Origin: Octopus sinensis
Lineage: Eukaryota
DNA length: 64,000 bases
NCBI RefSeq assembly: GCF_006345805.1
Contig: NC_043024.1
Location: 15,314,001 to 15,378,000, forward strand
Reading direction: 5' to 3'
Each line of letters opens with the position of its first letter. Position 1 is the stretch's first letter. Position numbers and translations under genes: made by a program. The notes under the pieces are model-generated. The model worked only from the letters and a program-made list of their open reading frames with translations. It did not search any database and was not told the origin of the DNA. Below, in pieces: positions 32,226-49,788 of this stretch.

Positions 32226-33212
32226 AGTGAAATGATTGGAAATGAACTCAAAGACTACAATGTTATAAATAAATTTGGATACAATACAAGTGTTCTTAAC
32301 TTGAAGCATCCTATTGAACGTGGTGTCATTACCAACTGGGATGATATGGAGAAGATTTGGTTGCATGCATTCAAAGAGTTGAAAGTTGCACCTGCAGAAA
32401 GCTCTGTCTTGTTGACTGAGGCTGTTTTTAACCCCAAGTACAACAGAGAAAAGATGGCCGAAATTATGTTTGAAAAGTTTAACACTCATGCATTATGTAT
32501 TGCTGATCAGGCTTCACTGTCCCTTTATGCTTCTGGTCGTAACACAGGTATGTCTGTGAATGTAGGTCATGGCATCACCCAAATTGTCCCTGTCTATAAA
32601 GGGTCAGTTAAACGAGAAGCTGCTGTCCAGTGGGAGTTTGGTGGTGTGGACATGACAGATTACCTTACGAGTATGTTGACTGAACGTGGTTATTCCTTTG
32701 ACAGTCCTTCTCAGACAGAAACTGTCCGTAACATCAAAGAGAAGTGTTGTTATGTTGCTCTAGACTTTGAACAGGAAATGCAGACTGCAGCCTCTGAGAA
32801 ATATAAATTACCTGACAAGCAAGTCATTACCATTGGCAATGAACGATTCCGTACCCCGGAACTTCTGTTCCAGCCAAGTTTAATTCATGAGGGATCTGAG
32901 GGTATTCATGTAAGAATTCGTGATTCAATCATCAAATGTAATAGGTGGATTAAAATGCCTCAATTTCATAAAATTGTATTGTCCGGTGGTTCGACAACAT
33001 TCAGAGGCTTTGCCCAGCGCCTAAGAAAAGAAATGAGTTCCATTCTGGCACCTGCAACGATATTTAAGATTATTGATCATGGAGAACTTAAATACGCTAC
33101 ATGGCTTGGTGGTGCTGCATTGGCTAGTTTGTCTATCTTTAAAGATTGGTGTATTAGCAGAGAAGAATATAATGAACATGGCTCAAATATTCTCGATAAA
33201 AAATATACGTAA
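32226..33212 (+). CDS. Divergent actin-related gene copy 2, exon 2 (369 aa in total)
   Basis: Acceptor ctttttgtatttcag|AGT GAA ATG; open frame to TAA; actin core motifs throughout. Confidence 0.93.
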   Translation, partial: SEMIGNELKDYNVINKFGYNTSVLNLKHPIERGVITNWDDMEKIWLHAFKELKVAPAESSVLLTEAVFNPKYNREKMAEIMFEKFNTHALCIADQASLSLYASGRNTGMSVNVGHGITQIVPVYKGSVKREAAVQWEFGGVDMTDYLTSMLTERGYSFDSPSQTETVRNIKEKCCYVALDFEQEMQTAASEKYKLPDKQVITIGNERFRTPELLFQPSLIHEGSEGIHVRIRDSIIKCNRWIKMPQFHKIVLSGGSTTFRGFAQRLRKEMSSILAPATIFKIIDHGELKYATWLGGAALASLSIFKDWCISREEYNEHGSNILDKKYT

Positions 33213-33989
33213 TATGTATGTGTCATTGATATATATATATATATATGATATAATATAATATAAATCCAGTTCTGTGTGTTTGTGTGTGTGTGTGTGTGGA
33301 TGTGCGTAAAAGATTATAACGGCTGTATTGTTCAACTGATTTTACTCCAAAGTGGGAACAGATATTACTTATGTTCCAGGGATGGACCAAGATTCCAAGC
33401 ACTTCCAAATACAAAATTAGACAATACAACGCTGCACTAAAGATAATATCATTTGGAGTCACAAAAAATTTAACTGAGTCAGGATTCATGCAATCTTTCA
33501 GGATCCAAAGTCAGATTTATCATCGGATTGCCTCTTTACTACCTCTGTCCAATGAATCACCAAAATCAGCCTTTCATTGTTTATAATCTGTACATGTTCT
33601 TTGGTTACGAAATAAGCTACCAAAAACATATTTTTTTAATTATGTGTAGTTACTTTATATACATATATGAGCTGAAGACTTTCTTTTAACATTTCACTTA
33701 ACGTCTGTGTTCCATGCTGGCATGGGTTGGAGAGCTGTTAATTTGGAAAGTTGGAATTGCAGCTACCAGCAGTTGAGAACTACGTAATCTAGCCAGCGAT
33801 TTTAAATTTCATTATTCTCTTTAACCCAGGCAATGCTGGGTATTTCTGCTTGTCTATCTATCTATCTATCTATCTATCTATCTATCTATCTATCTATCTA
33901 TCTATCTATCTATCTATCTATCTATCTATCTATCTATCTATCTATCTATCTATCTACATATACATATATATATATATGTATATGTATAT

Positions 33990-35459
33990 ATATGTATAAA
34001 TATATATATATTAAATTAGAGATAAAACCCTTATTAGGCAAATCAAACAGTGAAAAACATAAACCAATACATAGAAATAAAATTAATTAATATAATATAA
34101 AAAATATATAAAATATAAAATTCAAAGTTTAAATTATTTAAATTTATAGTTAAAATTTAAAAAAATATTTAAATTATTGATTTATACTTATAAATTTATA
34201 TATATATATATATATATATTATTTTTAGTTTTAATATTATTATTATTTTATTATAATTTTAATTTTTTTAAATATAAATATAACTATCAAAAAGTATTAA
34301 AAAGTTTAATATAAGTAAAGAGTAAAACCACTACGATCGTTTCATGCCCATAACCTAATTCGAAAAACAATAATTTGAATTCAATTAATAATTCGAATTA
34401 TGGTTATAGTCAATCTTCAGGTCAATGTTAATATTTAAATAAATAATCAAAAATATTTATACGATATTTTTTTAAGAAATAAATAAAATAATAATTTTTC
34501 TTATAAAAAATCTATTATCAAACTAGAAACTTTAACGATTATAATTATGTCAGACAATCGATTATAATGTTAAATATTAATTTTTAAGTATTAATTTTTA
34601 AGGTAAGAAACCCACAAATAATCTAATCTCAGTTATAGTCAATATCTAATTACATAAATATTTTACAAAAAAAATGACTATTCGTATTATTAAATATAAT
34701 TTCAAGTCAAATAATTATATAATATTTGAATAATAACTAAATTATCAATGAAAATATATAAATGTATAAAATATAAGAATTAAGATCTAAAATTATCTCT
34801 ATCAATAAATATATATGCACGTATAATAAAGACCTAATAAATTAATTATTCATTATTACTTATAAAAATATTAAAAGATTAAAGATGAAATAGCTAATTG
34901 TAAACAAATAAACAAACAATCTTAAAAGAACGCTATAACTAATTAACGATCCATATATATGGTTGGCTAACTAATAACTTTCAAAAATCGTATAGTTAAG
35001 AAACTAAAATGAAATAAAATACTAATGAAATAATGAATCCGTGGTTATATAGTATCAAATAAATACTACGAATATATTTATCAAAGGAAAAAATATTACT
35101 ACCAATTATCAATTTAAAAAAAAACAATATATAAGTTATAATAACAATTATAAAAAATTTAAAATAACTATCAACAAATATAGTTATTTAAGACTAAAAT
35201 TTATGCTATCAATACATGTATATACATGAAACCTAACTTTAAAAATACTCGTATAACTGTTAACGATCTATATCTCTCTTTGGCTAAGTAAAGTCTTACG
35301 AATAAACGTAAAGTTAAAATTTTATAATTATATAGAAAAACTACGATAACTAGATCATTATATAACCATCAGTATTTATATAAAATACAATATTATACAA
35401 TAAGACTTGTTAAAATATTAAAATTTTATTAAAAATTTGCTAAAAGAAGAAATAATGTT
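33990..35459. repeat. Extremely AT-rich segment contiguous (in unit B) with a Penelope-like element; truncated at the duplication junction
   Basis: Duplicate of ~50690-52065, which continues into PLE-like coding sequence on the minus strand. Confidence 0.6.
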
Positions 35460-48200: not shown

Positions 48201-48801
48201 TCCTTACCCCTTCATCCCATCTCTTTCCGGGTCTCCCTCTTCTGCAGATACCATCCACTTTCAGTGATCACCACTTCTTTATGCAGCTGGCCTCATTCAT
48301 ACACATCACATCTCCAAACCAACGGAGTCTTCTCTCTTGCATGCTACATTTGATTCCTCTTATGCCCAACTTTTCTCTCAATACATTTGCACTTTGTCGT
48401 ACATGTGCACTGATGTTGCACATCCAACAGAGCATACTACCTTCATTTCTCTCCAGTCTATGCACATCTTCTGCACTGAGAGCCCATCTCTCACTTCCAA
48501 GGAGTATAGGCCATTCACACACAAGCATCATACAGTCTACTTTTCACTCTGAGGGAGACTCCTTTTATTGCTGTTAAATACTCCTAATAACTATTTTGTG
48601 ATGGAATGTTCTGAATAGAGTTTCAATTACTCAAGAAATAAGGAAAACACATTTCATCCTTACTTCAAACTTTAACAGAAAGATATCAAAGGATTAATCA
48701 TGGGATATTATAGTATTTAATATGGGATATTGTAGGATTAGTTATCAGAATTCCATAATTCATGTAATTCTTTCTATAATTCCTGTATTTTTGTATTTCA
48801 G

Positions 48802-49788
48802 GGTGAAGCGATTGGAAATGAACTCAAAAACTATAATGCTAAAATTAAATCTGGATACAGTACAAGTGTTCTTAACTTGAAGCATCCTATTGAACGCGGT
48901 GTCATTACCAACTGGGATGATATGGAGAAGATTTGGTTGCATGCATTCAAAGAGTTGAATGTTGCACCTGCAGAAAGCTCTGTCTTGTTGACTGAGGCTG
49001 TTTCTAACCCCAAGGACAACAGAGAAAAGATGGCCGAAATTATGTTTGAAAAGTTTAACACTCATGCATTATGTATTGCTGATCAGGCTCCACTGTCGCT
49101 TTTTGCTTCTGGTCGTATCACAGGTATGTCTGTGGATGTAGGTCATGGCATCACCCAAATTGTCCCTGTCTATGAAGGGTCAGTTAAACGAGAAGCTGCT
49201 GTCCGGTGGGATTTTGGTGGTGTGGACATGACAGATTACCTTACGAGTATGTTGACTGAACGTGGCTATTCCTTTGACAGACCTTCTCAGACAGAAACTG
49301 TCCGTAACATCAAAGAGAAGTGTTGTTATGTTGCTCTAGACTTTGAACAGGAAATGCAGACTGCAACCTCTGAGAAATATAAATTACCTGACAAGCAAGT
49401 CATTACCATTGGCAATGAACGATTCCGAACGCCAGAAGTTATGTTCCAGCCAAGTTTAATTCATGAGGGATCTGAGGGTATTCATGTAAGAATTCGTGAT
49501 TCAATCATCAAATGTAATAGGTGGATTAAAATGCCCATATTTCAGAACATTGTATTGTCTGGTGGTTCGACAACATTCAGAGGCTTTGCCCAGCGCCTAG
49601 AAAAAGAAATGAGTTCCATTCTGGCACCTGCAACGATATTTATGATTATTGATCATGGAGAACTTAAATACGCTACATGGCTTGGTGGCACTGCATTGGC
49701 TACTTTGTATACCTTTAAAGATTGGTGTATTAGCAGAGAAGAATATAATGAACATGGCTCAAATATTCTCGATAAAAAATATATGTAA
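48802..49788 (+). CDS. Divergent actin-related gene copy 3, exon 2 (369 aa in total)
   Basis: Acceptor ttttgtatttcag|GGT GAA GCG; frame open from the acceptor to TAA; lacks the internal Met found in copies 1 and 2, consistent with dependence on exon 1. Confidence 0.93.
   Translation, partial: GEAIGNELKNYNAKIKSGYSTSVLNLKHPIERGVITNWDDMEKIWLHAFKELNVAPAESSVLLTEAVSNPKDNREKMAEIMFEKFNTHALCIADQAPLSLFASGRITGMSVDVGHGITQIVPVYEGSVKREAAVRWDFGGVDMTDYLTSMLTERGYSFDRPSQTETVRNIKEKCCYVALDFEQEMQTATSEKYKLPDKQVITIGNERFRTPEVMFQPSLIHEGSEGIHVRIRDSIIKCNRWIKMPIFQNIVLSGGSTTFRGFAQRLEKEMSSILAPATIFMIIDHGELKYATWLGGTALATLYTFKDWCISREEYNEHGSNILDKKYM

Follow-up and report, generated by a model that had tools for sequence, protein, structure and literature searches.

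The question raised by this locus is why two neighbouring copies of an actin-like gene of Octopus sinensis differ more in their second exon than in the non-coding DNA beside it, mostly by amino-acid changes. The genes lie in a window of 64,000 nucleotides (CM016886.1:15314001-15378000, exact match; all coordinates are window positions unless stated), where self-comparison gives a tandem duplication of ~17.3 kb with a two-exon actin-like gene in each unit. The original prediction, made from the letters of the window, ascribed the excess to diversifying selection and/or to import of exon sequence from other paralogues. As discussed below, the excess is real against the adjacent DNA without being unique to the exon, and it is probably explained by a patchy conversion mosaic in the tandem array together with near-neutral evolution of the protein, rather than by an adaptive diversification that can be demonstrated. 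The elements compared are the following.

18546..35459, + strand: duplication unit 1, holding actin-like copy 1 (XP_029652589.1); self-BLAST blocks of 92.9-98.6% identity to 35720-52065, and pairwise alignment
35720..52065, + strand: duplication unit 2, holding actin-like copy 2 (XP_029652464.2); self-BLAST and pairwise alignment
23032..23154, + strand: copy 1 exon 1, 41 codons, ATG...CAG followed by gtatgt; tblastn and sequence reading
32226..33212, + strand: copy 1 exon 2, 328 codons and stop, 987 nt; Pfam Actin 337 bits for the spliced product
40345..40467, + strand: copy 2 exon 1; two differences from copy 1, both nonsynonymous (R28S, R34H)
48802..49788, + strand: copy 2 exon 2, 328 codons and stop, 987 nt

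In both copies exon 2 is preceded by ...tttcag, is in phase 0 and, as had been claimed, is open to its stop, and the spliced products are the RefSeq models XP_029652589.1 and XP_029652464.2, named 'actin-like'. A further paralogue, copy 4 (XP_036370416.1), begins 4.9 kb past the window end; its exon 1 is of another type, its intron measures 3.5 kb, and the 3' third of its exon 2 is 30% diverged. In the databases, only Octopus sequences match with more than 60% identity, ordinary actins being at ~50%; the array is an octopus-restricted set of divergent actin-like genes that was not described before. For comparison we used ~102 kb of O. vulgaris DNA (OX597840.1) orthologous to the locus, and one copy of O. 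bimaculoides (CM046627.1). Here s1 or c1, s2 or c2, and c4 denote copies 1, 2 and 4 of O. sinensis, v1-v5 the O. vulgaris copies and b1 the O. bimaculoides copy. The O. vulgaris orthologues of copies 1, 2 and 4 are v1, v2 and v5, respectively, v3 and v4 being extra copies; in all five, exon 2 is an open frame of 987 nt.

Divergence of exon 2 and of its surroundings

Copies 1 and 2 differ in exon 2 at 45 of 987 nt (4.56%), with 35 nonsynonymous and 10 synonymous differences that change 32 of the 328 amino acids, exactly as had been counted by hand. Eight of the amino-acid changes fall within the first 20 exon 2 codons (1, 3, 10, 13, 14, 15, 17 and 20), and exon 2 codon 112, which is actin D154 by alignment, encodes N in copy 1 and D in copy 2; both observations reproduce the earlier ones. 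The adjacent non-coding DNA is diverged by ~1.9% (77/4028 = 1.91%, or 79/4029 by another count), significantly less than exon 2 (Fisher p = 8e-6), which also lies above the duplication-wide non-coding mean of 281/13754 = 2.04% (binomial p = 1e-6). In the 3' flank (33300-33800 versus 49922-50421), for which ~6-7 differences in ~500 bp had been reported, there are six substitutions and one gap column in 501 columns. The excess between the paralogues is significant in O. sinensis and in O. vulgaris alike (4.56% versus 1.9-2.1%, p ≤ 5e-5).

It is noted, however, that such an excess is not confined to the exon. Along the non-coding DNA the divergence varies far more than expected by chance (dispersion index 4.0, p = 4e-21) and forms a mosaic of ~0%, 0.4%, ~2% and ~4%, and 6.7% of the non-coding windows of 987 columns hold at least 45 differences (maximum 61), all of them in the intron at ~24.2-26.2 kb. 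The parts of the mosaic that matter here are the following.

24200..27500, + strand: intronic block, mostly a fragment of a retrotransposon without long terminal repeats (non-LTR); 131/3262 = 4.0% diverged; RVT_1 open reading frame (ORF) on the minus strand of the unit 2 copy
27879..29587 = 45212..46920, + strand: identical tract of 1709 bp, including the Tc1 relic; zero differences
31452..32211, + strand: intron segment of ~760 bp, found in copy 1 but not in copy 2 (junction 48781/48788); ends 14 bp before the exon 2 acceptor
33229..33242, + strand: (TA)n microsatellite, beginning 16 bp past the stop; 47 bp longer in copy 2; 3' edge of the diverged block

The intronic block and exon 2 are diverged alike (4.0% versus 4.6%, p = 0.47; for fixed differences, p = 0.82). 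Thus the divergence profile along the duplication, which had been suggested as a check, places exon 2 above the adjacent DNA and the intron block on the same level as exon 2. Two outcomes had been named that would speak against the prediction. One was that exon 2 is no more diverged than CpG-matched neutral DNA, which is not the case against the adjacent DNA; the other was that conversion from a fourth paralogue explains all differences with dN/dS well below 1, while copy 4 accounts for the N-terminal cluster only and dN/dS is not well below 1.

At the other end of the mosaic, the Tc1-like transposase relic, which is recognisable in frames +1/+2 at ~28600-29300 and had been described as nearly identical, shows no difference at all and lies inside the identical tract of 1709 bp. 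By a rough estimate from 328 differences in 14864 columns, such a tract would occur by chance with a probability of ~1e-14. In O. vulgaris, v1 and v2 differ by 1.2-3.4% across the stretch that is identical in O. sinensis, and in the four-sequence alignment of 27501-29531 there are 18 'concerted' versus 8 'orthologous' site patterns, this prevalence of concerted patterns indicating conversion in O. sinensis after the speciation. The tract is a recent conversion between copies 1 and 2 in O. sinensis only, a collapse of the assembly being less likely.

The edges of the diverged block at exon 2 are sharp. The differences start with base 1 of the exon (32226) and end at 33208 in the final sense codon, after which no substitution occurs before 33467. 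A length difference stands on either side of exon 2, the ~760-bp indel 14 bp upstream and the 47-bp (TA)n indel 16 bp downstream. Along the duplication, block edges lie at three indels, of 54 bp at 24204, of ~755 bp at 31456 and of 47 bp at 33228, the first of them being the left edge of the intron block, where low divergence changes to high, and a microsatellite at ~29588 ends the identical tract. These heterologies may well delimit the conversion tracts, leaving exon 2 as an island.

The related species help to date the differences. Of the 45 in exon 2, ~36 are common to v1/v2 and are therefore older than the O. sinensis/O. vulgaris split. Differences fixed before the speciation amount to 86/3256 (2.6%) in the intron block, 26/928 (2.8%) in exon 2 outside an N-terminal patch described below and 10/73 in the patch, and to 12/1889 (0.6%) in the intron beside the exon and 9/2106 (0.4%) in the 3' flank. 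In three orthologous comparisons the excess of exon 2 over its flanks is absent: exon 2 versus adjacent DNA gives 0.51% versus 0.91% for s1-v1 and 1.42% versus 1.90% for s2-v2, and between O. sinensis and O. bimaculoides exon 2 is at 9.9% and the non-coding DNA at 9-18%. An excess confined to the paralogues points to flanks that were homogenised and not to an exon that was accelerated. Moreover, both the copy 1 and the copy 2 lineage carry derived changes, which fits an old divergence and not a single import.

Based on these data, the following history is proposed. Members of the array are gained by duplication and lost, and they exchange sequence in patches through gene conversion or unequal crossing-over. 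The flanks would make the duplication look too young, because the copies were re-homogenised over most of the 17-kb unit, first shortly before O. sinensis and O. vulgaris separated and then again in O. sinensis. Two blocks would have escaped, the intronic retrotransposon block and exon 2, the latter as an island because the flanking heterologies are expected to halt conversion tracts, so that no selection would be needed to keep exon 2 unhomogenised. Within the island the protein changes at about the neutral rate (dN ~ dS ~ the old intron block), which implies that the 35:10 split of replacement and silent differences is such as chance gives. The N-terminal cluster would be a separate and older haplotype of subdomain 2 and the D-loop that was moved among the members of the array.

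Exchange among the paralogues and the N-terminal patch

Three further elements are needed to describe the exchange.

4609..5562, - strand: copy 3 exon 2, inverted paralogue (XP_029652590.1); outgroup and exchange partner
32852..32865, + strand (copy 2: 49428-49441): five differences in 14 bp, codons 209-214; copy 2 is as the inverted copy 3 at 5/5
32226..32284, + strand (copy 2: 48802-48860): subdomain-2/D-loop patch, actin residues 42-61; 10 of the 45 differences in 59 nt, nine nonsynonymous and one synonymous

Copy 4 is 97-99% identical to copy 1 over 30550-32885 and ~30% diverged from 32886 onwards, with 20/660 exon 2 differences between c1 and c4 before that position and 100/327 after it (max-chi2 of 136 at 32886). 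In accord with this, the copy 4 orthologue has 12 differences from copy 1 at exon 2 nt 60-660, where copy 2 has 20, while at nt 661-984 it is an outgroup even to O. bimaculoides. Besides the 5/5 match at codons 209-214, copies 2 and 3 differ at only 2/90 nt over codons 191-220, against ~18% overall. The pairwise homoplasy index (PHI) test for recombination gives p<0.0002 with nine sequences and p = 0.019 with the six close copies, and the distance matrices of the segments are mutually incongruent. Thus the predicted import from other paralogues holds for the N-terminal cluster and some short tracts (copy 4, copy 3, PHI).

Three special routes of exchange were considered and set aside. A single donor of all 45 differences conflicts with the derived states in both lineages and with ~10 copy-2-specific states that are found in no sampled paralogue. 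Ectopic conversion of the intron block by another copy of the long interspersed nuclear element (LINE) is not supported, since the fixed differences, with window 1-2302 as outgroup, split 18/32/5, which speaks against a one-sided import. Conversion of the exon by cDNA, suggested by the edges that match the exon, is unlikely, as the 259 bp after the stop (the presumed 3' untranslated region) are identical.

The patch at the beginning of exon 2 behaves as a unit of its own, with a max-chi2 breakpoint at 32285 (10/59 versus 35/928). The copy 1 form (type A) occurs in c1, c4, v1, v3 and v5, and the other form (type B) in c2, v2 and v4. In b1, 5/10 states are as in copy 2 and 5/10 as in copy 1, so that part of the patch difference is older than the O. 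bimaculoides split and both lineages have changed. The adjoining ~760-bp segment is present in c1, c4, v1, v3 and v5 and is lacking in c2, v2, v4, b1 and copy 3, which makes it probably an insertion in type A. Patch type and presence of this segment go together even in genes with unlike exon 1 types and 3' ends; v4, for example, is copy-1-like apart from its copy-2-type patch. The N-terminal cluster is thus a haplotype linked to the ~760-bp indel and distributed as a mosaic among the array members, including copy 4. Its omega is ~2.1-2.4 locally, where the excess over the neutral split is not significant (p = 0.44), and 0.47-0.74 in deep comparisons. Substitutions cluster on both sides of the indel (31426-31455, 32211 and 32226-32284). 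The patch may owe its differences to positive selection, to import from an unsampled donor or to mutation associated with the indel, which are indistinguishable here.

Selection and the competing explanations

Counting by NG86 gives, for copy 1 versus copy 2, S = 207, N = 777, Sd = 10 and Nd = 35, with dN 0.0465, dS 0.0499 and omega 0.93; with a bootstrap 95% confidence interval (CI) of 0.49-2.25, dN/dS of exon 2 is not significantly above 1. Because 79% of the sites are nonsynonymous, the 35:10 split is the neutral expectation (79:21, binomial p = 0.85). That the exon differs mostly by amino-acid changes is therefore true as a count (35/45) and not as a signal. The same near-neutrality is seen in v1-v2 (omega 0.83 by NG86), in tree-free counts over six or eight copies (nonsynonymous fraction 0.78-0.80, equal to the neutral fraction) and in the changes after the speciation (31 nonsynonymous:7 synonymous), omega being 0.55-0.8 in deep comparisons. 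Biopython maximum-likelihood dN/dS for s1-s2 was 1.92, a value that we discarded, as it conflicts with NG86 and YN00 (0.93) and with v1-v2 (0.87) and presumably comes from an unstable optimisation with few synonymous changes.

An important point is that the silent sites are raised as well. The synonymous divergence, 10/207 (4.8%), is above that of the adjacent non-coding DNA (1.9%, p = 0.011) and equals that of the intron block (131/3262, p = 0.58), from which dN does not differ either (p = 0.55). Non-CpG differences are as frequent in the exon 2 remainder (3.02%) as in the intron block (3.03%), against 1.4-1.9% elsewhere, and the rate at A/T sites is 3.4-4.2% in exon 2 and the intron block versus 1.5-1.8% elsewhere. 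Since the synonymous excess and the excess controlled for CpG and A/T both match the intron block, the whole exon acts as an older block of DNA, in which replacements are not specially accelerated.

As regards the encoded proteins, copies 1-4 match Pfam PF00022 with 332-339 bits, copies 1 and 2 with 337-339 (cut-off 27), from profile position 2/3 to 402-409 of 410, as expected of the actin family. The best PDB sequence hits are all actins (E = 1e-114), with ~53% identity to actin. An AlphaFold2 (AF2) model of copy 2, of moderate confidence (predicted local distance difference test, pLDDT, 69.6; predicted template modelling score, pTM, 0.68; low for residues 34-63), matches actin chains with template modelling (TM) scores of 0.64-0.67 and E ~1e-35, which suggests that the actin fold is retained. 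Both copies carry G15Y, D157H, H161Q and C374Y and copy 1 also D154N, so that three to four of the canonical set S14, G15, K18, Q137, D154, D157 and H161, the nucleotide-site/catalytic residues of ATP-hydrolysing, filament-forming actin, are replaced. S14, K18, the DNGS motif, Q137, G156, G158, G302 and K336 are kept as in actin, and there is a 5-residue deletion in subdomain 4. The differences between copies 1 and 2 include M44, Y143, T148 and T351 (actin numbering), Y143 and T148 presumably lining the hydrophobic cleft into which M44 is inserted. In F-actin, M44 enters this cleft and T351 lies against the D-loop (PMC5736627).

As to the frames, 4.7% of random point changes in exon 2 would make a stop. 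At least 75 substitution events are needed for the six close copies, and with nine copies the minimum is 296; the probabilities of no stop are 0.028 and 7e-7, respectively. No copy has a frameshift, despite 0.13 indels per substitution in non-coding DNA, a ratio that is inflated by microsatellites. Open frames so improbable under neutrality imply that some selection acts on the genes and make pure decay unlikely.

Consider now the explanations that compete with the conversion mosaic. Positive selection on the protein, driving the exon 2 copies apart faster than neutral DNA, would account for the divergence above the adjacent flanks, for the frames that stay open against neutral expectation, for the 9:1 ratio and the local omega of the patch and for the presence of M44, Y143, T148 and T351 among the differences. 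We regard it as distinctly improbable, because omega of the whole exon is 0.93 with a CI that spans 1, the patch excess is insignificant, synonymous sites and the non-coding intron block are equally diverged, the three orthologous comparisons show no exon excess, and the changes after the speciation (31:7) as well as the deep comparisons of exon and patch give no sign of acceleration. The diversifying selection of the original prediction is therefore not borne out as the cause of the excess; the dN/dS counts yield no omega significantly above 1 for the whole exon 2, and the orthologues from related species no exon excess over the flanks. Unlikely, too, is selection against homogenisation of the primate L/M opsin type, whereby conversion tracts overwriting exon 2 of functionally diverged copies are purged and those in the flanks are tolerated. 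The signature is as in the gibbon L/M opsins (PMC3213168), the diverged block is the coding exon to within ~15 bp, ORFs are maintained and the pattern is stable in O. sinensis and O. vulgaris; yet the non-coding retrotransposon block escaped equally (4.0% versus 4.6%, p = 0.47), so that coding function is not required for escape, and the indels at the block edges offer a mechanical explanation. In addition, exon 2 was overwritten by conversion over two-thirds of its length in copy 4 and in short stretches of copy 2, and an omega near 1 speaks against strongly protected functional differences. Because a non-coding block is equally diverged, this explanation is not needed.

Relaxed constraint on decaying or nearly unconstrained genes cannot make an exon diverge faster than the neutral DNA beside it and, in spite of an omega of 0.83-0.93, a neutral nonsynonymous fraction (0.78-0.80), the replaced nucleotide-site residues in both copies (G15Y, D157H, H161Q) and the in-frame stop in the O. 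bimaculoides copy, is a very improbable cause in view of the frames of 329 codons without stop or frameshift in nine copies of two species, the Pfam Actin scores and the AF2 match to actin structures. An inflated local mutation rate (by CpG, GC content or mutagenesis associated with indels) or an assembly error is hardly credible. The exon GC content of 0.39 versus 0.22 in the 3' flank and the substitutions on both sides of the ~760-bp indel are compatible with a mutational cause, indel-associated mutation being a known phenomenon; but the excess stays at non-CpG and A/T sites, which disposes of CpG and base composition, the exon rate is no higher between orthologues, and proximity to the indel explains the patch at most. 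An assembly artefact or haplotig duplication is excluded, since the independent O. vulgaris assembly has both copies with ~36 of the same 45 differences.

Several points weigh against the conversion mosaic with near-neutral protein evolution that we prefer. The diverged block fits exon 2 within ~15 bp on both sides, and coding selection, or selection against conversion as in the opsins, would give the same edges, so that the reading of the indels as barriers is tentative. Frames are intact in 9/10 copies across two species, which is improbable under pure neutrality. The patch is 17% diverged with nine nonsynonymous changes to one synonymous, and five of its changes are unique to the copy 2 lineage and occur in no sampled donor. 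An average omega of 0.55-0.93 could mix constrained sites with unconstrained or positively selected ones.

A more speculative idea, which we consider very doubtful, is that the patch and the D-loop cleft residues (143, 148 and 351; also 139, 167, 344, 348, 350 and 375) would be co-diversifying cassettes shuffled by conversion, giving a small combinatorial repertoire of actin-like protomers with different self-association interfaces that selection would hold open although the mean omega is close to 1. In a list of 11 hydrophobic-cleft residues there are three changes versus ~0.8 expected, a marginal and post hoc result that serves as a lead only.

Related systems and further features of the array

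This kind of pattern is already known, the gene array being what is new. In the L/M opsins of primates (gibbon), exons are more diverged than introns, dN is not above dS with both above the intron divergence, and conversion is mainly non-coding (PMC3213168). The octopus tandem pair likewise has an exon more diverged than its intron, dN not above dS and conversion tracts mainly in non-coding parts. By contrast, strong purifying selection acts on the opsin exons, whose tuning sites are known, whereas omega of the octopus copies is ~0.9; in the octopus, moreover, an intronic block also escapes, block edges lie at indels and further paralogues exchange. Exons more diverged than introns and untranslated regions, termed 'accelerated evolution', were reportedly found by Nakashima et al. 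in 1993/1995 in the phospholipase A2 (PLA2) isozyme genes of snake venoms. The PLA2 pattern, with a dN/dS close to or exceeding 1, is reported from numerous paralogues and species, and positive selection is held responsible for it. The octopus exon resembles it in having diverged further than the non-coding DNA around it, at a dN/dS near 1, but its excess appears in the paralogue comparison only and is gone between orthologues.

With regard to the protein, canonical actin is extremely conserved, unlike the octopus copies with omega 0.55-0.93 and altered nucleotide-site residues. Mammalian testis ACTL/ACTRT genes are lineage-restricted and fast-evolving actin-like genes. In the Drosophila obscura group, D-ActL and Arp2D show male-biased expression and evidence of positive selection by the McDonald-Kreitman test (PMC7038667). 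Like these and Arp53D (PMC8291977), the octopus genes keep the actin fold, are taxon-restricted and have a high rate of amino-acid replacement; they differ in lying in a tandem array with active conversion, gene conversion being unmentioned in the Drosophila paper (PMC7038667). The lineage-restricted, fast-evolving actin-like genes of Drosophila and mammals are candidates for the closest biological analogues, and the array is a candidate counterpart of them. A literature search on octopus actin-like genes and testis returned nothing relevant.

An exon that exceeds its flanks mostly by replacements is usually read as adaptive, and in the octopus one sister-species assembly takes such a case apart; it is thus a caution for scans that flag exon-over-flank divergence. 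The array combines altered nucleotide-site residues with kept frames and active exchange, and its copy number differs between the sister species. The extra O. vulgaris copies v3 and v4 are intact and lie between the orthologues of copies 2 and 4 (merged region coordinates 48288-70136); O. sinensis is without them, and its gap between copies 2 and 4 is 19 kb versus 59 kb in O. vulgaris. Their absence reflects either a copy-number difference between the sister species or a collapsed assembly. The O. vulgaris array is annotated as a single fused protein of 1331 aa (CAI9741788.1).

It is also observed that, over window 23032-35459, the copy 2 lineage is 2-5x more diverged between O. sinensis and O. 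vulgaris than the copy 1 lineage (2.24% versus 0.89% in all non-coding DNA, 2.77% versus 0.55% in the intron block, and 14 versus 5 differences in exon 2). Either s2/v2 are not strict orthologues or there was more exchange into the copy 2 lineage. In the O. bimaculoides copy (CM046627.1 region, exon 2 at 16730-17716 there), exon 2 has an in-frame TAA at codon 207 and the gene is annotated as two proteins; its exon 1 (10001-10120) is a mosaic of the two exon 1 types with 12-13 differences from each and a 9-nt deletion.

The inverted copy 3 has its exon 1 as follows.

10615..10737, - strand: copy 3 exon 1, type II, MADVVHP...

Copy 3 carries in-frame deletions, and a shorter and rewritten C-terminus (...VVHPRGWWPGDAELTSLL...QGTQK, then stop) replaces the conserved actin PPERKYSVWIGGSILASL region. 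This C-terminal variant occurs also in the O. vulgaris and O. bimaculoides relatives and is therefore an old, retained form. The promoter and exon 1 of copy 3 (10639-11528, - strand) are ~90% identical to 22216-23130 (copy 1) and 39529-40443 (copy 2) and 94% identical to copy 4, its exon 2 being only ~82-86% identical; the uneven divergence along the gene thus reaches the older paralogues.

Finally, we note several repeated elements. The non-LTR retrotransposon fragment is present in three copies, at 1-2302, 25644-27951 and 42974-45284; the two intronic copies are ~89% identical to that at the window start, and the unit 2 copy keeps a minus-strand ORF of 350 aa with an RVT_1 domain (E = 1e-25). 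An insertion found in unit 2 only (36716-37594; unit 1 junction near 19547-20157), with a 178-aa ORF at 36752-37288 that has no Pfam match, is probably a fragment of a mobile element. Internally repetitive, minisatellite-like arrays with many staggered self-matches of 75-90% identity lie at 3100-3640, 14640-15070, 37905-38104 and 52223-52383, the last three being mutually related.

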